From Klebsormidium nitens (lineage: Eukaryota; Plantae; Klebsormidiophyceae), in NCBI GenBank assembly GCA_000708835.1, contig DF236988.1, positions 62,001-126,000 of the forward strand: DNA of 64,000 nucleotides, given 5' to 3'. The translations under genes were made by a program, and so were the position numbers. This document shows positions 1-12,090 of this stretch, piece by piece. The first letter of the stretch is position 1; each line of letters opens with the position of its first letter. The notes under the pieces are model-generated. The model made no database searches and was not told the origin of the DNA. It saw only the letters and a program-made list of their open reading frames with translations.

Positions 1-194
1 GTTGCATGTCAGACTGGAAGATTCGAAGTGAAAGGGACAGCGAGAATTTGCAGAATGTGGACGGGGGCACTCAAAATCTTTCGCCATATGTGGGCCCACG
101 TAGGCTTACTAGAAACCCCCCGTCAAGAAAACATGCACCAGAACATTTTCCCGGCCCACCACTCCGTTCCGCTGTCGCCCGTTCCGCTACTCAC

Positions 195-3100
195 CCGTTC
201 CGCTGTCCGCCGCCTCCATGCAGCGCATTGTCCTGTTGAGCGACTGGCGAATCGCCGCGCACAGCTTTGGGCTGAGCGTCACCATCAGCTGCCGCAGGCG
301 CGGCGGATCGGCGCCGCCCTCGACGGTCGCGGCCGCGCCCGCGTCGGGCTTTGGAGGGTTTGGCACGGCGCTGGGGGCCGCGGCGAGGGCCGCCTTGAAG
401 CGCTGCTCTTTTTGAAGGAGGCGGGTAGTGATGACTGTCGTCTTGCCAGTGCCGGAGCGCCCGAGTATGAAGACGCTTTTCGGGTACCTGGAGCCGTAAA
501 ACATAATTCCGCGAAAATGCCGTTCATGAAGTCGCCCGTCTCTCAGGCGGGTAGAAACATGTTCTGTGGAGGTTTTCTTAATCCGATTAAGCGCGAAGAT
601 ATATGACCCCTGATCAGCATGGTTGCGAGCAGACTTCCAGACTATCGAGAAAGTGCCCAGATCCCTGGGTAGGAGCTGCCACCAGTATGGAAATAACGAA
701 GACGACTTTTTAAAGAACTCGTACTCCACTCGATTTTACTGGCACTCATAAAGGGTTCTCCAAGAATTCAAGCACGGAAGAAATTTTCCGCCCAGACTTA
801 AGTAGACACGGAGGCGGTTCTCAAGCTTGCAAGCAATCAGAAGTGCATACATGACAGCCCTGCTTGACATTGGCAATGCGCTGAGATCCGGACCGACTTG
901 CGACAGCCCACTTCGAGCCAGAGGGGCTACAATGGTAACCAGAAGCAATCAAACTACATTCCAATTAGGTACAGTAAAAGGGCAGATAATGGTTGAGTGG
1001 GCGCTCACTGCACGATGGCCGCCTCCTGCTCGCTGACCTCGAACGGCAGCTCCAGCTCGCTGCCGTCAGCTGCCGTCATCAGCACGTGGGCTGCCCCGGG
1101 CGACATCTCGTAGAACTTGAGGAGCAGCAGGCTCTCATCCACAGCCGCTTCCTCCAGCCCCGCGGCGGCCGCTTCGCCTGCAAAGTTTCAGGATTTCAGG
1201 CTTTGGGATTAGGATTCTTTGAAAGTTGGGCTGTTGTCTGATTTGGCGTCTACTGTCTTTTCACAGCCTGTTGCTATTCTCTGCCAGGAAACGAGCAACG
1301 CGTAAGGATTGGGACGGCAGGCAAAGATTGGGACGCCACGCCCAGAGAGTTCGGGCGTCACGGGCCTTCGGACGTCGAAAGTGTGTTGTCAGCCGCAATT
1401 GACTGCTTGGAGTGACTGACTGGCTATCGAGACAGTCGTGGAGAACGCCTCTGAAACGGCTCAAATTCCAAAAGCGGGTCGGACCTTGGTTTCGGAATTT
1501 GAAAACTTCTGAACACTCCCGTCCGAATCAGAGATTCAACCGAGCCCTTGCCAGCATGGCTCTCTAATTTTGCGAGGAAAGGATTTTGCGGACGTACTTC
1601 GTACTCATGTTAGAAACTTCGACAAGCGTACCGGCAGCTCGCACACCAGATTGTTCAATAAAAATGTTTGATACCTACTTCTTATTCACTGCCATATCCT
1701 GGGAGCCATGGACAGTGGGGAAGATCCATGACTCTGAACTGCTGAACACAAACCGCCAGCGGAGTCGTTTGAAAGACAAGCGGACCACAGAACGTTCAAA
1801 ACAAGATCATGGTGAATTTGAGGACAAAGAAATGATTTTCTTGACGACAGTGCGGAGGACGAATGAGATGAACGTAAAAGACGCACATCACCCCCGAAAT
1901 TCTTACCAGAATGCTCGAGGGCCTCCTCCGAGACTTCGACGGCCCGGTCCTTTTTGAACCACACGAACCGGTCGTCTCTATCCCAAGTGAGCGGCAGCAC
2001 GAGACCGTTCTTGTCCGGTGACCGTTTCGCCCGGCAGCGGTGCAAATAGCCGGGGGAGTAGGTTCGATAGCTGGATTCCAGGCGTCGGATGAAAGCCAGG
2101 CGCTGGCTGCTCAAGACCAGGTGCCACGCGCGAAGGACCTGGCGGTGAAAAGGAGAGGACTTTTGTGCGGATGTAAGTTTTTCTCATGAAGTCCTGATTC
2201 CCCGAGAAACGGAGCGATGCTTTTGGAAGAGATGATCGCCCTTTGAATTCAAACGGTGAGAAGCGAGAACGTGGTGTGGATAAGGAGGGTCTCATAACGG
2301 ACTATGTCTAGCGGCTGACCCCTCAAGAAACCCCGCGAAAGGAAGACTCGCTAATAAGGGACAGACCATACAGATCGCCGGTTGAAGCCGGCAACAACCG
2401 GGTATTCTCTACAAGTAGACTTTCTCAATCATCGAGATAATGTTCCAGCGAAATTGAATGCAAGCATGCATCTTTGGCGTGAGTGATGATGCGTAGAAAG
2501 CACCAGCAAGAGAACATCATGCCCGGTTCATCAAGGCCCCACCGCCACAAAGATGAAAGGAAATGTCAGTGCTCTCAGTTCAAACACAAATGTGCGCTTT
2601 TGAAAAGCGGAAACTATCTGCACTGATCCGAAGTGCCCAAATGAGTGCCTTTGAGAATGTCCCCCTCCCTCAAGCAAGAGCACGCCTTTGTCTCGAAAGT
2701 TCGAAGGTCTTGGCCGGAGCTTTGAATTAAGCTGCTCTGACACCCTGATCCCAACAGCAGTTTGCGGCGACATACCTGCGTGTGGACCTGCGTGTTGGTC
2801 GCCCGGTCGACGTCCACCGTCCAGATGAGGCTGTAGTTGTACACTGGCAGCAGGTGGATCAGGTCCCGGAAGTCTTCCCCGGCGTCCGCGTCTCCGGACG
2901 CGAACTTCGGACGCTTCCCCTGCGCGAGCGACTGCAGCTGGAAGAGGACCTTGAGCCGAGCCTCGCGCGACTTGATGCCCACCAGCGCGTCGCGCAGCTC
3001 CTTGGAGAAGACTATCTGCACGCGAACGGGCAAAGATTGAACGGGTCAGTGGTGATCTGCTGACGTCACGGCAACGCGGCCGATGACGTGTGGACCAGAC

Positions 3101-6100
3101 CACCGCGCCCGAGCGCATGTTGCAGCTTTGGGACGACGCCTATCCCAAATGCAACACTGCCAGCTAGAAGTGGCGGATGCAAAAAGCATTGCAGTGCCAA
3201 GCGTCTGCGGCTTTTCAGGATCTTTAAGGGCTTCCGTCATTCGGGTTCCAGGATTGTACACAACTTTTTGGGTCGCGTTGAAGAGAGATAACCTCAGAGA
3301 GAAGATGATATGAGCATAATAATTGGAGACAGAGATTGAAATACCAGAACTCTCCCTGCATAGAATCTCAAAGCGACCACAAGAAGTGCAGAACCTCAAT
3401 CCGTGTACGCAGAAACAAAAGGGACGCCCGGTTTGGGCGACCTCACCTTCCAGGGGAGACCTTCGAACATGCTCGAGTTCGACGTCAGGATGTTGTTCCA
3501 GTCCTCGTAAGCCGCTAACCTGTTCTTAACCACCTTCTGCATCGACTTGTGCGACCCTGCTTGGATCCTAGCCCCTCGCGTAACCGCGTCCTCAACCAGG
3601 CTCTTCCAAACGGGATCGCGCGCCTGCAGAGTCTGCGCGTCCCCGACGATCCAAAGCGCAAACTTGGCGCGGGTTAGCGCCACGTTTAACCGGCGCTCAT
3701 CCCCGAGAAACCCGATAACACCCGCCCGGTTAGCCCTAACTGCCGAGAAGATGATGACGTCCTTCTCCCGCCCCTGAAACCCGTCCACCGACCGGACCTC
3801 TACCGTCAAGCCGGGGCCCGACTGGCTGCCACGTGTCACCGCAGGAACGTGCCCCGCGAGCAGCTCCACCTGGCGCTTGTAGGGCGTGATGACGCCGACG
3901 TCAGCCGACACCCCGGCGGCCTCGCATGCTGACCTCAGCTTTCTGAGCAGATGTAGAACCAGGTCCGCTTCCATGCGGTTGCACTTACTCGCCCCCCCTG
4001 GGTCTTTCTCTTCCCTCCCTTCCGCCGCGTCGATGAACGCATACGGGCCCAGCAGCCTGCTGACGTAAGCTTGATTGTACCTGCCCTCCGTGACGTTGCG
4101 CCCGTCTTGAACCTGCTCCCCGTAGAAGGCCCCGAGCGGCCACCGGCTGATCTCCGGATGCATTCTGTACTGAGTGTTCAGCAGTACGCTGCGGTGCCCG
4201 TTTTCCTTCAATCGCTCGAAGAGACTCCGGTCGTATCGGTGCTCCTTCGCGAGGCGACTCGTCACAGTCGCGGGCAGCTGCAGGTGGTCGCCCACCAGCA
4301 CCAGCAGCTTGAGCCCCGGCCAACCGGTGAGAATGATTGCCGTTTCCGCTTCCACCAGTTGCGCCGCCTCGTCGATAAGCGCGAGATCAAATCTGCCCGC
4401 CGATCTCATTTCGCTCCGGCCCGCACACGAGACTGTGCAAAATACGAGCGCCGCGTTTTGCAGGCAAGAGGTCTCCAGCTGGGCAGCCGACGGGCCGATG
4501 TTAATCGGCACCCGAAGCGCGCTGGGCCGCATGGAAATCCCCAAAATCCTGTCCACCGCGGCGCTGACGCGTCGCGCGTCGCTTTCCAAGCTTTCATCCT
4601 TTGGACGCGGATTCGCAGTAAAGTAGAGCTCGAGCGCCTTCGACGCTTGAGGCAGCGCGCCGACGGCATTTCTCAGGGTTTGGAGGTTTTGGAGAAGCTC
4701 GCGCGCGCTGTCGCGGAAGGACGCCAGGCCGGGGGAAGCGCTCGGGAGGTCGTTGCACAGAGGCGCTGCGTTCTCCTCCAAGTCTTGATGTACCATCTGA
4801 AAGAAGAGACGGGGTAAAACAGGTGTACACTGGCCAGAACCCGGCCAAAAGATGAGCTGCGGCATCTAAGCAGCCATTGGAACGGATCTGATGAGGGATT
4901 CGTCGTTTCCAGACGCGTTCATCTTACCCGGTGAAGACAAGAGAACACCAAAAACTGAAAGAGAAACGCCCTTACACAGCTGCGCTGAGTATTTTACCAT
5001 CTGAACATCAAATGTATAGAGGGGAATCGCAATGTCGAGTTTTGCAGGTTCAAATCGAGGGCTTGCTTCAAGATTTCAAGCAGCTAGTGTCGCTCGACCG
5101 ATTCAAAACGTTTCAAGTTTGCTTGTGGACAGTCCGATCGGCTCGAGAGAAGCATGAAGGCAGACTGCGATCAATCATCAGGCTGGTCCAGGTGCCCTTT
5201 TAATTCTCATCTCCTTCCACGCACTTTAAATGAATTATCATAAGACAAACGGGATCACAAGGTTTCCGGCCAGCACCTGAAGTTGTTTGATGCAAAACCC
5301 CTGGAGGCTTATTGGTTGGTCGGCCTTCCGAGCACTTTCGCCGCCTTCCGTTGCCTGCCGGTACTGCTCGTCTGCCGATCGGAGGAACTCAGTCAGAGAA
5401 TGCACCCTAGCCACCCACCCAGCTACCGGAGACAGGGCCCCCGCCAATCGTTTGGCCCTTGCCGGAAGGTAAACCTCATTTAGTGGCCCGTCCGTCACGT
5501 CGAGACTGTCCTTGTTCCCGATCAGAGCGATATCCCCGGCGCCAAACCCCTTAAACCCTGTGGGCAGCGCGCGCGCTCCGTCGGCCCTCAGCTCGCGCAG
5601 CAGCCGGAGGACGACCTCCGAGACCGCCACGTTGGTGGGCGCGCTCACGAGCGCGCGCGCGCCCAGCCCTGCGAACGCGCGCAGCATGGCGACTACCGTG
5701 CTGGTCTTGCCGGTACCCGGGGGCCCTTGCACGAGATTTACCGACGCGAGTCCGGGCGCTTGCCAGGCCGAGACAACGTCCAGAACGGCGTCCCTCTGCG
5801 AGGGGTTCAACTTTGCTCCCTCGCAAAGATTGCGTAACGCGCTCTTGAGTTCGGCCAGACCTCGTTGCATCTGCCCCTCTCCGGTAGGCGACTCCGCCTT
5901 TCCAGCGCCCCGGTTTATTCCGCCTTCCGACCGCCCGGTAGTCGGCTGCTGGGCGCCCAGGACTTGTGACGTCAGCCCGAATCCGGCTCTCGGTGCAGAT
6001 CCGTCCACCCCACTATGCAGCGCCCTCCAGATCCGCAAGCTGGTCGCAAGCGGCGCGAGGCACGTGGCGTGCCAGCGGCCGTCCCGGTTGGCCGGATCGC

Positions 6101-8611
6101 AGAGCGCCTCAGATTCCCGACTGCCGTCCGGCAGGTAGACCGTGGCTTCTTGGTAGGCGCAGTCGCCCGGGCTGTCGTCACGATCGCCGCGCAGGACGCC
6201 CAGAGTGTATAGGACGCCTGGTGATGCGGATCGATGCTTTCAGTCTAAGGAGTCTGTACGATTCGTAATTCTGGGGTAACCTGTACTTGAGGAATAAGCT
6301 GAAAAAGGGGGATGTCCCGAGCGTCGGTAAGATGTGATGTTCTTTATTGCACCTCACGAGGATGTCATTTGAAATACACAAGCAAGGCTTTGGATGAAAC
6401 TCCCTCTGGATGCAGACGCTTCTGTTCTCGTGCCGCAGATGAGGTGGTCTCCCAAGAAGAGTGGTGCTCAATTCATGTTATTCTGGGCATTTTGATGAAC
6501 CATCAAGCGGACGAACCTTGAAAAAGGTCAAGGATTGTCCGAAGGTCGAAGCAAAGGAAGATCTTCGGCAAAGGAAGATTCACTTCATTGTTTTTAGATT
6601 GACCTGGTCAAACTCTACGACTTACTGGGCGATTGGCCGTTTGAACGTTCCAAGTTTTCGATTCTTTGCAGCGGCTTCGATTTTTGAGCTTATGCACAGA
6701 ATTCCCCTGAATAGTGTCACGAGAGCAACTGCGTAAGGAGTTTGGGGTTCCGCTCACCTTCTCTTTGCAGATCTTCCTGTCGTTCCGGCTTCAGGTTCGA
6801 AAGTAGTATCACGTCCGTGGGCTTGAACGCCTTCTCCCCCCCGGAAGTCTGTCCGACTCCCTCAAACTCGAATCTGACAGTTCTCAGCGGGGGTTGCAAA
6901 GAGCCTGGGCCGCGGCCATCGCCGACCCCCCGAAGTTGAATCCTTCGGCACACCTTTGCGTCCAGCTCAGAGAGGGCCTGCTGCAGCTGGCCACGTGTCT
7001 CCTCGATGAGGAGCCACGCGAATGCGGCAAAGTAGGCGGGCGGGGAGTCGAAAGCATTGGGGATGGTCCGAAGCTGTAAGCAAAGATAGACAGATAAACG
7101 ACCGGATCAGTCAGACTCGATTCAAAGAGGACAGCAAGCCGCACGGAGGAAGCGGGTTTAATGAACCGGCGCACAGTTACGCAATCTGAGGTTGTTCGCA
7201 ACCTTTTGTGCGAATGAAAAGACCCATTGTTTGCTCGGTACATTCAGGGCAGAGAATCTTGGCAGTCCCTCGTGGAAGATACGCCTTATGGCTGCGAACG
7301 TTCTTCGGAGGGAGGTTATTCTGTTATGCCCGCCGATCCCGCTAAAGATATAAATTTCTCGCAGAGGAGAACGTCGTCCTGAGAAGATCATTCGATCTGT
7401 ATTGTTGTCGGAGAGAAGCGGACCCATAAGGACTTAACACGGCAAACGCATCCGCCAGCACTCTTTAATGGCGTATGCGGTTCCTGTTTTCTGTTTCTCT
7501 TTCCCTTTCACTTTCTGCACCAACTCAGAGCCACAATCTCAGCGCTTTCTCAGGGAAGTATCTGGGCACAGACCAAGTCTAAACATGCATGGCACAGGCC
7601 ATGTCTCCCTCTTTCTGAGGTGCTCTCAAATCACTATAATACCAATCAGGGAACTTCCCGCGTCACTGGAAAGGATGTGACTTATGCAAAGACAAGCCAC
7701 CCAAGCGCTTCGTTAATGGCAACCCCTATATATAGGCTGATCAAAACGCACACAGCATGAGATTTGAACCCTGATCTTTTTCCCGACCAACAGTACCTGG
7801 TGTTCCAGCCACTAGTCCAGCACGGACGCCCTCAAACAACTCTCGCAAAACGGATTCCTTCATGGCCAACGCTCTTATACGTCCACGGTCTCACGGAGAC
7901 ATGGCCTAATGAAAAGTTCAACCCACCTTATCAGCGTGCAAACTCTCATCCAGGATGTCTTCCATCGACCACTTCAGCACGTGCCCCTCCAACGGTCCAT
8001 GGGGTAGCTCCACATTCCGCTTCTCTGCTGATCTCACTTCCACCGCCAACCCATCTCTATGGTCGTCCGCTTCTCGAACAGCTCCTTATGGTCATTCACG
8101 ACCTGCACCGAAATTGGGCGCCCCAGCTGCTTCAAAACCCACAGCCGCCGATTGTCCAGGCTCCACCACTTGTCCTCGTGGCGCACCACTCTGATGGGGG
8201 GCAGATCGGCCACCTTCATCACCCCCCCGCGAAGGAGCTCGAGGACTTCCGTCAGTGGCTGCCCTCTGCTCGCTCTGGCAGCATTGGCATAGGAACGAGC
8301 GGCCCCCCCAACACTGCTGCTAAACCTTTCTGCAGCGTTACGTGCCTCAGCGTTACGTGCCTCTCCAACTGTAGTTCTCTCTGTATCTGACGCAACTGGT
8401 GCGCTCTGCTGCGCGAGCCTGCTGGCGGTGGCTCCCTTGCTGAATACTGGCTCGATCGAGTTCTTTGTGAAGCGGATATCAGCAGGATCTAGCACTACAG
8501 TGCCTTCAGAAACGGGCAGAGGGTGAGTCAACAGGGGTCCCATTCTGGCGGTCCAAAACCTTGCCGCAGACTTTGCGCCACAGGTATGAGCGATTGCGCG
8601 ATCTCTGCCCC
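195..8611 (-). CDS. Multi-exon plant-type double helicase: DUF6469-like region + Upf1/Sen1-type SF1 helicase (AAA_11/AAA_12) + UvrD/TRANK1-like P-loop domain, probably with an N-terminal ParB-like domain. Runs off the left edge; 5' end uncertain.
   Basis: Exons on the minus strand with GT-AG junctions in matching phase: ~8611-7927, 7073-6758, 6217-5277, 4796-3447, 3015-2776, 2138-1907, 1177-1009, 487-195. Motifs: VLKWSMEDILDESLHADK|LRTIPNAFDS, VQGPPGTGKT, LIDEAAQL, LVGDHLQLP, LLNTQYRMHPEI, SVDGFQGREKD, NVALTRAK, LPWK|IVFS, ESLLLLKFY, ELPFEV, ILGRSGTGKTT, LRQLMVTLSPKLC. Two apparent 1-nt frameshifts (~8055 and ~1095-1098). Confidence 0.88.
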
Positions 8612-8618
8612 TGAACAA
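8034..8618 (-). CDS. ParB/Sulfiredoxin-fold domain of the polymorphic-toxin type; probable N-terminal module of the helicase gene
   Basis: LDPADIRFTKNSIEPVF ... LPPIRVVRHEDKWWSLDNRRLWVLK matches the IRF..SI..F / P.I.V / SLDNRRL signature of ParB-like domains as I recall it. Confidence 0.7.
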   Translation of the reverse strand: MFRGRDRAIAHTCGAKSAARFWTARMGPLLTHPLPVSEGTVVLDPADIRFTKNSIEPVFSKGATASRLAQQSAPVASDTERTTVGEARNAEARNAAERFSSSVGGAARSYANAARASRGQPLTEVLELLRGGVMKVADLPPIRVVRHEDKWWSLDNRRLWVLKQLGRPISVQVVNDHKELFEKRTTIEMGWRWK

Positions 8619-10938
8619 AAAGCTGACCCAGAGCGCCTGCTTACATGACTTTGCAGCTATGAGCTTGTAGCGAGATGACGACGGGCCGAATATTGCTGAT
8701 GGTCCGGTATGAAAGCAGCAGAATCCTTCCTTTCTGATCCGAAAGTGATGGCAGTCAGAGCATTTCGATCAGCCCATAATTGCTTCTTTCACGGAAGTTT
8801 CGAGTCCTTTCGAGGCTACCCTTTCGTGGAGAAGGTTCGGCTTGACCTTGCGATCCAGGCGCCCGCCTGTCAACGGCAAAGCTTGGTTAGGCTCTCTAAA
8901 CCGTTGATTGCAATCATGCACAAGGATCATACCTGCGAATAAGGTAGCAAGCTCCGAGAGTCGTGCTTGTGGTCCCCAACTTCAGAGCAGTCTTGAGCGC
9001 GTTCATAAACCAAACCTTTCAATTCCAGTACATTGTCAACCGAGCGTATCCAATACGCCCGAGTGTCCGCGCCGCGCAGCCGCCAATCGCGCGTGCCGCT
9101 CGCGCTCGCGGCCGGCTTAGCGGCCTGCCCACCGCAACACCAGCCCTGCGAAGAAAGCGACCCCGTAAAACCTTGAGGGTCGCACCTGCACGGCCGCAAA
9201 GCTGACGGAACTGCTCAATATGCATTTGATCACACTATTTTAATGAGATTAAACGTCAGAGAACAGCGTTACATTGACCATAGCTCCCAAGCTAGTCCTA
9301 AGGCATCATCATTATCCAAGGCAGAACTAGTAGCTGCCCGTACTGAACTCTCAGTGTTGAAGGTTGAATTCTAAGTAGTCGACGCGCCCCTCTATAGATA
9401 GCCTGGCCAATTGCTACGCTGCCTCGCACTGTTCTGAACACTTCAGGCGTTCAAAGCTTCGTTATCTAAAGCTTTCGTTTATCCCAAGGCGGTGTGGGCG
9501 CCGCCCAAGAAGTACTCTAAGGGATAGAAGGAAGTTTAGAGCAGCAACACAGAAACGAGCATATCATTTCGGCGCTTCGAAGAGACGTATATCCTTACCA
9601 TGTTCGAAGCTTAGACATGTGGTCGAACAACAAGATATCTAGAGTTTACATTACCAAGGAAAATGAGCTGCTTGTCGTTTCTCAAATCTTTTAGCAGGTG
9701 CCGGCGATCCTTGTTTCAGTGAGTCGTTTGAGAGAGCCGCAGATCAATAACACTCGAAGACCCCGCAAGGACTACGTTGGCCGTCTGAAACACTGTTTTT
9801 CCTCCTAGCTAGCTAGCTACGCCTGAAGGAAAACAAGGCTTCATTGCAAGTGAACTCAAGTGCTGCTTGTTCTCTCTTCGAGCGATCGCAGTCGGTTCGA
9901 AGCGCACGGTACGGGTCCCCAGTTGCACGCAACTGCAGCTGATATCTGTTTGACCCACATATATCTCGTCATCTTCTCTTGAAGCAGCATCGGGGAAAGA
10001 GTGCCTTTGGAAGCAGGAAGTGGTTCAATCATTCGGACGGACCGGCAGGCGAGTACCCGGACGTCCCTTAGGTATTGTGCAGGTCCCTAAGACAGAGCAC
10101 CTCAAGTGGTTTACTTAGAGAACGTACGGCCCCATTGGCGGCTACATGTATGATTGATGTCACACGAACAACTACACGTAGAGACTGCAGAAACTCAGCG
10201 CAACATGCACCCGACGAAAGAAGCCGTTGCCGTCAACGTAGACAGTTGAACAGCGGCAACAGTGTGGCAAACGATCACACCCGGTATCAAATTTTTTGAA
10301 ATGCAAGACATGGAGATGGAAGCAGTCTTGTTGAGCGTGTCATATAAGCTCATCCAGTGTACAAGCTCTATGCTTTTTGATCTGCAAGGGCTAAGAGTTG
10401 TGCACGTCATGATAAATGCATCTGATTGCAGCCAAATGCGTATGGAGGCTGTTCCTAACTCGTGTACTATTTGCTGGTTAGCATCCAGTTTGTGTCGATA
10501 CACGTCCCTTCATAAGCACTGCACATAGAAAAACATGACTCCCTAATGAAGGGGAGGGGACATTTGAGAATCAGTAACCGATCCGGAGCAGAGTAGGATG
10601 CTTGGGCTAGCCCCTAGACTCGAGTCTTGATTGCATCACCTTTTGTTCCAGCGTTTAACAAAAAGCTGAAAATAGTACGTCCATTAAAAATTGCCACGGT
10701 GCCAGTGACCCGCTTCGACGGAAGACCATAATCAGGTATAGTTCCAAGCAATGTATACACAGTATTTCAAAGACGCTGCCTCCTACGACCAAGATAGCCT
10801 GACCCACCACACGCTCGATCTTTCGGCTAGTATCTCCAGAATCTAATCTTTGTACGAGCCCATCGAACGACGAACCCGTATCCCCCCCCTCTTGAAATAA
10901 GACTGTGACTTACTGTAAGGTCAGAAACTTCTGTCTAT

Positions 10939-12090
10939 CTACTTGCTGACATCGCCTTCGCCCTTTTCCAGGTCCTCTTCGACAAGAGGAGCTCCCTCGC
11001 CCTTAGTAAGCTGACTCTTGATGAAGCCAACCAATATCACGAGCGCAGACACTAGAAGGATAGTCGACTCCCCAATACTCAAGGCGAGGTAGAGGCAAAA
11101 TGGGCTTGACGTCCACAAGTCTTGCCAAATTGGGTCACCAAAGGGGGTACGTGCTGCATACGGCTCCCCCAGTTGTTCGCAGCTGGTCTTAACTTGGCCC
11201 ACATAGAAATTCAGCTTGTCTGTTTGACACAGCTTCAGACTCGTGACGTTCTTTCCAGCACTGGCACTGGCACTGGCCATGAATTGGTTCAGACCCCGGT
11301 CCGGGTTGGGCAACCCAACCGGTCCCCAAAGAGTGCGCCTATTCTCCTGGACCGAGCACCTGATTGCTCGAGGCGTCGCATATGCCGCCAACAGACTACC
11401 CAAAATGAAGGCAATGAGGATTCCCTTCCTAGCCATGGATGCATAAGAATCCTCTTCCTGTCCAGTAGCAACGTGTGGACTCTTTCCTTCCACTTCTGAG
11501 AGGCATGCCTCTGCCTCATCTAATGCATCTTGGCTGTGACTTCTTGGACTAGAGGAACTCTTCACTCCAAGCTCTACTGACTGCCTTTGTGAGTCTCTAA
11601 CGTCAGATTCAGGATCAGGTCTTTCAGTGCATACAAGCAAGATGAATCCCAGCACGATGACTACAACAGAATTCCAGACGGTCAAGCTCACAAATGCACG
11701 TATGGCCGGCCACTTATTATCCCAGAGTGCCATGCTCTGGTGATGCGTGATGTAGATTCTGGGAGGGGGTGCCTCACAGATGGCATTGCTGGGGGTTTGC
11801 ACCTGGTAGAAGTCATAGCGTGGACCGTTTGCCGTGAACGACTGGCACTTGATCACCTGGAGAGGTGCTTGGGTTTGTTCAACGAGCACCGGGTTTGTCC
11901 AGTTTGCGCACTGAGTCGAAAGCAGAAACTCATTGACCAGGGACGGCTCGGGGAGGGACAGGAATTTCTCACTGGCTCCATAGACAGGTGGGTTGAAACT
12001 GAGGAGGAGGAGCCACATGCACAGCGTGGCTGCTAATGCAGATTGTCCGGTTCTTGCAGCCATCTTTGAGCGTTCTTTGCACGACGTCAA
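10939..12090 (-). CDS. Intronless orphan membrane protein (signal peptide, about 3 TM segments, Cys-containing loops)
   Basis: 383-aa uninterrupted ORF. Hydrophobic N-terminus (ALAATLCMWLLLLSF) and hydrophobic segments SVVVIVLGFILLVC, GILIAFILGSLLAAYA and TILLVSALVILVGFI. No family recognised. Confidence 0.65.
   Translation of the reverse strand: MTSCKERSKMAARTGQSALAATLCMWLLLLSFNPPVYGASEKFLSLPEPSLVNEFLLSTQCANWTNPVLVEQTQAPLQVIKCQSFTANGPRYDFYQVQTPSNAICEAPPPRIYITHHQSMALWDNKWPAIRAFVSLTVWNSVVVIVLGFILLVCTERPDPESDVRDSQRQSVELGVKSSSSPRSHSQDALDEAEACLSEVEGKSPHVATGQEEDSYASMARKGILIAFILGSLLAAYATPRAIRCSVQENRRTLWGPVGLPNPDRGLNQFMASASASAGKNVTSLKLCQTDKLNFYVGQVKTSCEQLGEPYAARTPFGDPIWQDLWTSSPFCLYLALSIGESTILLVSALVILVGFIKSQLTKGEGAPLVEEDLEKGEGDVSK

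Follow-up and report, generated by a model that had tools for sequence, protein, structure and literature searches.

Tox-ParBL1 domains have a predicted ParB fold, a conserved N-terminal Ser or Thr and an [NT][RT][RT] motif that is mostly RR. The published description of the family places them in bacterial polymorphic toxins and, among eukaryotes, in viridiplantae, chlorophytes, metazoa and further groups (Zhang, de Souza, Anantharaman, Iyer, Aravind 2012, Biol Direct 7:18; PMC3482391). Here we describe a gene of the streptophyte alga Klebsormidium nitens NIES-2285 that combines a domain of this apparent type with two superfamily 1 (SF1) helicases, and that lies on the minus strand of a 64,000-nucleotide stretch of contig DF236988.1 (assembly GCA_000708835.1, positions 62,001 to 126,000; hereafter ‘the window’, whose numbering is used for all gene coordinates). 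We conclude that the gene is a copy of a conserved green-lineage fusion gene carrying a genuine one-nucleotide break in its reading frame, and that it is most likely a young loss-of-function or recently split allele.

The K. nitens domain resembles Tox-ParBL1 in displaying the motifs FT..S and DNRR. Unlike the Tox-ParBL1 toxins, it forms the N-terminus of an intracellular giant helicase rather than the tip of a secreted C-terminal toxin. A fusion to helicases is not mentioned in the text of the Tox-ParBL1 paper, and its supplement contains no ParBL1 entries. We assigned the domain to this type, whose type member is Neisseria gonorrhoeae NGK_2271, from the published motif description.

Proteins of the Srx/ParB-CTPase fold, which include sulfiredoxin (Srx), ParB, Noc, KorB, SerK, SbnI, PadC and Osa, share the fold of the K. 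nitens domain by two structure-comparison methods, and the Arg of their GxxR motif matches the invariant Arg of DNRR; their likeness in sequence is undetectable by Pfam or PDB profile searches. The algal domain has neither the helix-turn-helix or dimerisation domain of ParB proteins nor the catalytic Cys motif of Srx. The nearest experimental case of a ParB fold used as an effector is ToxB of CdiA, a ParB-fold ATPase toxin whose toxicity needs the GxxR arginine as well as ATP binding and hydrolysis (bioRxiv 10.64898/2026.05.05.722872). ToxB, like the algal domain, is a ParB-fold domain without DNA-binding modules, a likeness drawn at the level of the fold. It differs in its motif (GNHR), and bacteria deliver it to one another along with an immunity protein, a kind of partner not seen in K. 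nitens.

The helicase part belongs with the plant and algal proteins that combine DUF6469, AAA_11/AAA_12 (SF1B) and UvrD-like (SF1A) modules, with which the K. nitens gene is colinear over its whole visible length. Orthologues from Closterium, Calypogeia, Ceratodon and Selaginella carry the ParB-like head in frame, whereas in K. nitens it is out of frame.

A frame break in a conserved fusion gene

The ParB-like open reading frame (ORF) of K. nitens ends as KRTTIEMGWRWK (also written ...KELFEKRTTIEMGWRWK and ...NDHKELFEKRTTIEMGWRWK), followed directly by TGA at 8036–8034, and its last five to eight residues (..IEMGWRWK) are out-of-frame sequence. From position 8055 the −1 frame reads DGLAVEVRSAEKRNVELPHGPLEGHVLKWSMEDILDESLHADK, which starts with DGLAVEVR, ends with HADK and runs up to a splice donor (AAG/GTGGGT, last exon base 7927). 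This frame is blocked just upstream by a TGA (8094–8092) and a TAA (8088–8086), and its sole Met lies at 7965, in the sequence MEDIL. The acceptor at 7073 (...cttacag/CTT) opens LRTIPNAFDSPPAYF... in phase with the −1 frame. A preliminary description of the locus, made from the sequence alone, had noted the ORF end, the −1-frame reading, the stops upstream of it and the single late Met, and we found all of these details in the sequence.

Compared with a colinear reading, the interval between a conserved TT and a conserved G is one nucleotide shorter in K. nitens, and the break falls within 8060–8050. The C-terminal G....R strand of the domain is replaced in the ORF frame by IEMGWRWK and a stop, and survives (as DGLAVEVR) in the −1 frame only; the ORF does not contain a complete Tox-ParBL1 domain that includes this strand. 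The ending TT..DG..V.VR, which the preliminary description had given for the family, is real, with the G present in 95% and the R, six residues further on, in 67% of an 80-sequence alignment. In the model of an intact homologue, the strand that follows the break is confidently folded (predicted local distance difference test, pLDDT, 92–94). The pieces on either side of the break were searched separately or joined with X only, and the two frames, when joined with XX at the break, align colinearly with the intact homologues from the head into DUF6469.

Four annotated proteins contain the fusion in one frame: those of Closterium sp. NIES-64 (CAI5990433.1, 4009 residues), Calypogeia fissa (CAM6124396.1, 2620 residues), Ceratodon purpureus (M758_8G126400, 2920 residues) and Selaginella moellendorffii (SELMODRAFT_438696, 2806 residues). 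All four share the head, a linker (..VLKWS...N...NKV), DUF6469, AAA_11, AAA_12 and UvrD, and they include the ParB, DUF6469 and AAA_11 combination that had been proposed as a search target in streptophytes. The closest relative, P0002 (51% identity), comes from a related metagenomic alga and lies on a 63-kb Joint Genome Institute (JGI) metagenome contig; it reads ...KELFQKMTTRADGLVVAF...RSAEKLKGHVLKWSLENICQERLHANK in a single frame up to the GT of its donor, with the next exon and the AAA_11/AAA_12 exons downstream. The −1-frame remainder of the K. nitens exon 1 matches locus L002 (tblastn, E 7e-10), where it is in frame with the ParB part. The donor of L002 is at the same place, after NK (DK in K. 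nitens), and the position of the intron after the linker is common to both. In tblastn comparisons the ParB part and the linker share one frame in loci L001, L002 and L004, and occupy two frames in K. nitens alone. By the same method, the whole visible K. nitens gene follows the Selaginella and Ceratodon proteins colinearly and has the same order of modules; the streptophyte fusions have all of these modules in one frame, and the K. nitens gene does not.

The fusion spans Zygnematophyceae, liverworts, mosses and lycophytes, and the head and linker also occur on a transcript fragment of the chlorophyte Enallax; the linker is reached by about 19 of the 150 representatives listed. Among the relatives found, the fusion was not seen in seed plants. 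Judged from these alignments and reading frames, the fusion of a ParB-like domain to a double helicase is ancestral and conserved, with one-frame examples in five other green-lineage species or contigs.

In the preliminary description the architecture was given as not known from land-plant homologues. Its presence among the annotated proteins of Selaginella, Ceratodon and Calypogeia corrects this statement and removes part of the claimed novelty. We found no description of the fusion in the literature searched. The 2012 paper had already reported the domain type and its occurrence in plants, and the fusion proteins lie unannotated as such in at least four other streptophyte public proteomes.

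At one locus of the liverwort Calypogeia fissa (L004, CBCUJL010000047.1, 8001–18328), the annotation represents the orthologue by three genes in a row (628, 583 and at least 1921 residues); a second locus of this species gives the one protein of 2620 residues. The three-gene locus may be over-split, or may be another broken copy.

Transcript evidence

Run X1 (same species label, 2024) contains a 225-nucleotide de novo Logan contig (depth 2.4) that lies on the minus strand and spans 8110–7927 and then 7073–7033. It skips 853 nucleotides with GT..AG ends on the strand of the gene, and matches the genome with 0 mismatches and 0 gaps. The contig derives from RNA, since it is spliced, and it shows one RNA running from the last part of the ParB-like ORF through its stop codon into the first exon of the helicase. 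The splice from 7927 to 7073, which had been predicted from the phase of the two exons, is real. Because this independently assembled, spliced contig is identical to the genome across 8040–8070, misassembly is not the source of the frame break.

In the preliminary description the fusion was implicitly taken to be hidden by a sequencing slip, and transcripts over 8040–8070 and over the splice junction were proposed as a check. The junction was confirmed by that check, and the extra base was not present in the contig. A genome sequence that misses one base, with an intact fusion in vivo, would suit the age of the assembly (2014), the in-frame state of all homologues and the apparently untouched frames before and after the break. 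The identity of the de novo contig from the independent 2024 run, with no gap over 8110–7927, largely refutes such an error, and the break zone is free of long homopolymers; we regard this explanation as very improbable.

An intron bridging the two frames was also considered, and was rejected because the contig is unbroken over 8110–7927 and the −1 frame is closed at 8094–8086.

No contig at the ParB-like/helicase locus was found in runs X2–X4, and an exact-anchor search of JGI metagenome contigs for natural variants across the break gave 0 matches. At 3760–3905, all four runs hold contigs of depth 23–91 that match just two helicase-motif stretches of 26–28 nucleotides at 90–95% identity. These contigs continue into unlike sequence and come from other helicase genes; their depth implies that other SF1 helicase genes of the family are expressed far more strongly than this locus.

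Fate of the K. nitens allele

If the allele is a recent loss-of-function or split form, as seems most likely, its behavior can be outlined as follows. The break follows the last helix of the ParB-like domain and precedes the last strand, in a locus that is still transcribed and correctly spliced. Translation from the ATG at 8543 would stop at 8036–8034 and yield a ParB-like protein of 169 residues that lacks the last conserved strand, and the helicase part would be made only by inefficient re-initiation at an internal Met, or from another start. Because the frame break is real, a single fused polypeptide is probably not made in NIES-2285. The earlier proposal of a ParB–helicase fusion therefore survives in its evolutionary part, in that the head belongs to the N-terminus of the helicase (as the five intact cases indicate), and probably fails as a description of the protein produced here. 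The stop codon lies 107 nucleotides upstream of the exon junction, which by the general rule makes the mRNA a likely target of nonsense-mediated decay.

Several points weigh against this interpretation. Conserved residues before and after the break are intact, and the reading frame beyond it stays open for more than 3000 codons, which fits a very recent lesion and also fits a gene that is still in use, either split or recoded. The transcript support consists of the one shallow contig from one run, possibly of the same laboratory strain, and is compatible with a strain-specific or culture-acquired mutation. The contig begins at 8110 and thus leaves the 5′ end of the mRNA uncovered, and a promoter inside the ParB ORF may be conceivable.

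Were the gene still in use, the one locus might yield a stand-alone ParB-like protein and a helicase started at Met 7965 or from an internal promoter, with the two acting separately or in trans. The family has many stand-alone ParBL1-type proteins of 100–150 residues, no stop interrupts the helicase ORF, and the ParB motifs are intact. However, the ORF product would be without the last conserved G....R strand, modelled with confidence in the intact homologue, and in the homologues the counterpart of Met 7965 is an internal hydrophobic residue and not a start. In addition, several upstream AUGs precede this Met, the sole transcript contig bears both parts, and the sequence at 8055–7966, now non-coding, still reads as conserved protein. 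A functional split of this kind seems to us unlikely.

The coding potential kept on both sides of the break could also reflect recoding, in which a fraction of ribosomes would shift by −1 within 8060–8050 and thereby keep a potentially harmful ParB–helicase fusion at a low level; a shift at any point from the conserved TT to the conserved G would yield a product colinear with the homologues. The sequence of the break region contains no canonical slippery heptamer (X XXY YYZ), and the 100 nucleotides downstream of the break contain no stable RNA fold, none being better than that of shuffled sequences (z −0.18). Programmed frameshifting is unlikely for these two reasons. Moreover, the junction is in one frame in every relative examined, so that recoding would have to be a lineage-specific invention, and we give this explanation very little credence. 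A broken copy of an ancestral fusion gene, recently inactivated or split, is the interpretation that we consider most likely.

Fold and motifs of the ParB-like domain

A phmmer search of 1.84 billion representatives with the ParB-like ORF identified 274 relatives at E ≤ 1e-3. Their shared core comprises ∼115 residues (P..IRFTQ.SI...F; L..L..G.....DIPPIRV...G.WYSLDNRRLWVFK; K.TT...G.S...R). The K. nitens domain consists of an N-terminal strand motif, DPADIRFTKNSI, a disordered low-complexity insert, and a core that reads LLRGG..LPPIRV..WWSLDNRRLWVLK..KELFEKRTT. The insert (8255–8440, minus strand) is ∼60 residues long, rich in Ala, Arg and Ser (..AEARNAEARNAAERFSSSVGGAARSY..) and positioned between the N-terminal strand and the core. 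Disorder is predicted for this stretch (pLDDT 50–58); P0002 contains a similar insert and the plant orthologues contain shorter ones.

Searches against Pfam gave no match (to ParBc PF02195 or any other family) for the ORF, the −1-frame piece or 33 relatives, and the family profile, compared with PDB sequences, gave chance matches only, to solute-binding proteins. The family is too divergent for the Pfam ParBc model and for the sequence models of solved ParB/Srx proteins. We therefore turn to predicted structure. An AlphaFold2 model of the ORF, built with the family alignment, has a core pLDDT above 90. In a Foldseek comparison with the PDB, the first ∼40 rows were all ParB, Noc, Srx, PadC, SerK, SbnI or KorB, with weak E-values (≥0.02). 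VIA-align, run against 48,161 representative chains, placed Arabidopsis sulfiredoxin (6ky4) at the top (Z 8.8, root-mean-square deviation 2.6 Å, 85/89 residues), and nine of the ten matches that followed were ParB/Srx proteins; the runners-up were SerK, SbnI, Atu1540, human Srx, PadC, KorB, archaeal ParB-N, Osa and Spo0J. The model of the intact homologue gave the same ParB/Srx structural matches. Since both structure comparisons agree, for the ORF and the intact homologue alike, the models support the assignment of the ParB-like ORF as a ParB/Srx-fold domain.

The motifs described for Tox-ParBL1 are present as T26 and S29 (in DIRFTKNSI) and N131-R132-R133, and these sequence features support the membership of the domain in the toxin-associated Tox-ParBL1 type. 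Together with the structural matches, they bear out the toxin-type ParB/Srx identity that the preliminary description had proposed. The Arg of DNRR (R133) is invariant and the N-R pair is 97–99% conserved in the 80-sequence alignment. From its position in the predicted fold and from the Tox-ParBL1 description in PMC3482391, DNRR would be the counterpart of GxxR, the phosphate-binding motif with a conserved closing Arg that also occurs as GERR or GCHR.

Nearly all conserved residues are kept in the K. nitens copy, the exceptions being Q27K (in the FTQ motif) and F137L. Residue 27 (8463–8465, minus strand) is a Lys (FTKNSI) in place of a Gln that is kept in 90% of 78 relatives; the substitution may simply vary with lineage, or it may be an early mark of relaxed constraint.

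The named relatives that were looked up are all eukaryotic, save one long protein labelled BamB. ParBL1-type domains occur as tandem repeats in small proteins, among P0006, P0007, P0009 (Dimorphilus gyrociliatus), P0035 (Yihiella) and P0014, and also at the C-termini of proteins on annelid, dinoflagellate and other eukaryotic contigs. One protein of 827 residues pairs the domain with an Egalitarian-type winged helix. A tblastn search of the rest of the window found no paralogue of the ParB ORF.

Gene layout and gene models

The features of the gene are collected in Table 1. Over 7,985 nucleotides the window is 100% identical to scaffold DF236988.1. The gene runs past the start of the window and its visible part is incomplete; the matches to UvrD helicases lie in the annotated product of the helicase part, a protein of 3067 residues. 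For the helicase pair, Pfam gives AAA_11/AAA_12 and UvrD, and a language-model look-up leads to generic UvrD/REP clusters.

Table 1. Features of the ParB-like/helicase gene of K. nitens, in window numbering
Feature	Position	Strand	Description or basis
ParB-like ORF	8037..8543 (open 8618..8037)	−	169 codons from first ATG 8543, stop TGA 8036–8034
Putative Tox-ParBL1-type ParB/Srx-fold domain	8055..8504	−	Foldseek and VIA-align, motif fit to PMC3482391, conserved columns
DNRR, putative counterpart of the ParB GxxR phosphate-binding (P / Box II) motif	8145..8156	−	Family alignments
Break zone	8050..8060	−	One nucleotide short between conserved TT and conserved G
−1-frame remainder of exon 1	7927..8055	−	Last ParB strand DGLAVEVR and conserved linker (..GHVLKWSMEDILDESLHADK), ends at donor AAG/GT
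ATG of MEDIL	7963..7965	−	Start of annotated 3067-residue helicase model
Intron 1, 853 nucleotides, GT..AG	7074..7926	−	Joint 7927/7073 in run X1 contig
Exon 2, start of DUF6469 region (LRTIPNAFDSPPAYFAAFAWLLIEETRGQL...)	6753..7073	−	Alignment, tblastn
Upf1/Sen1-like SF1B helicase exons (AAA_11, AAA_12)	3444..6218	−	Pfam; tblastn colinearity with Selaginella and Ceratodon proteins
Middle region and start of second, UvrD-like SF1A helicase	1..3018	−	Exons about 3018–2785, 2147–1923, 1142–1008, 489–142

The annotated gene model KFL_000390110 (GAQ79822.1, 555 residues; 8930–12090, minus strand) joins the ParB exon, via a dubious short exon near 9142–9014, to a membrane-protein ORF. That ORF (10939–12090, 383 codons) has its own stop three codons past the supposed donor, and the model for this reason most likely fuses two genes, one encoding a membrane protein and the other contributing the ParB-like exon. 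The position of the MEDIL Met is occupied by an internal Leu, Val or Ile in the aligned homologues, and the annotated start of the helicase at this codon, position 6054 of locus L003, is accordingly a by-product of the break. Two gene models, KFL_000390110 and the neighboring helicase, are in this way corrected in a reference streptophyte genome.

Proposed function of the intact protein

The ancestral product would be one giant protein, made up of a nucleotide-binding head of the Tox-ParBL1-type ParB/Srx fold, the linker, a DUF6469 region with an Upf1/Sen1-like (AAA_11/AAA_12) helicase, and a UvrD-like helicase. Upf1/Sen1-like helicases as a family move 5′-3′ and UvrD-like helicases 3′-5′, and the two SF1 motors of the intact protein may load on, or track, a nucleic acid. 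By analogy with the GxxR motif of ParB-fold proteins, the head would bind and hydrolyse a nucleoside triphosphate (NTP) via DNRR, and could then act as an effector or as an NTP-gated switch.

We infer from this arrangement a possible role as an immune sensor-effector, and the protein may serve immunity, transposon control or RNA quality control. A gene in single or low copy number that has been conserved for so long points to an established surveillance role no less than to a rapidly evolving conflict system. As a tentative proposal, and one that we hold well below even confidence, the intact protein may be an undescribed nucleic-acid surveillance or immune sensor-effector, with a Tox-ParBL1 NTPase head on an Upf1-like and UvrD-like double motor, that is conserved across streptophyte algae, bryophytes and lycophytes and has just been lost in the K. 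nitens laboratory strain or is kept there at a trickle by recoding.

The comparison defines a conserved architecture in which a putative toxin-type ParB/Srx domain heads a double SF1 helicase. The K. nitens allele appears to be a natural broken version of it, useful for comparison and unsuited to functional work. Recent work has demonstrated two roles of the ParB fold, that of a switch operated by CTP, ATP or GTP and that of a toxin with ATPase activity. A eukaryotic ParB-fold domain coupled to helicases therefore offers a concrete and testable candidate for a nucleic-acid surveillance machine gated by an NTP.

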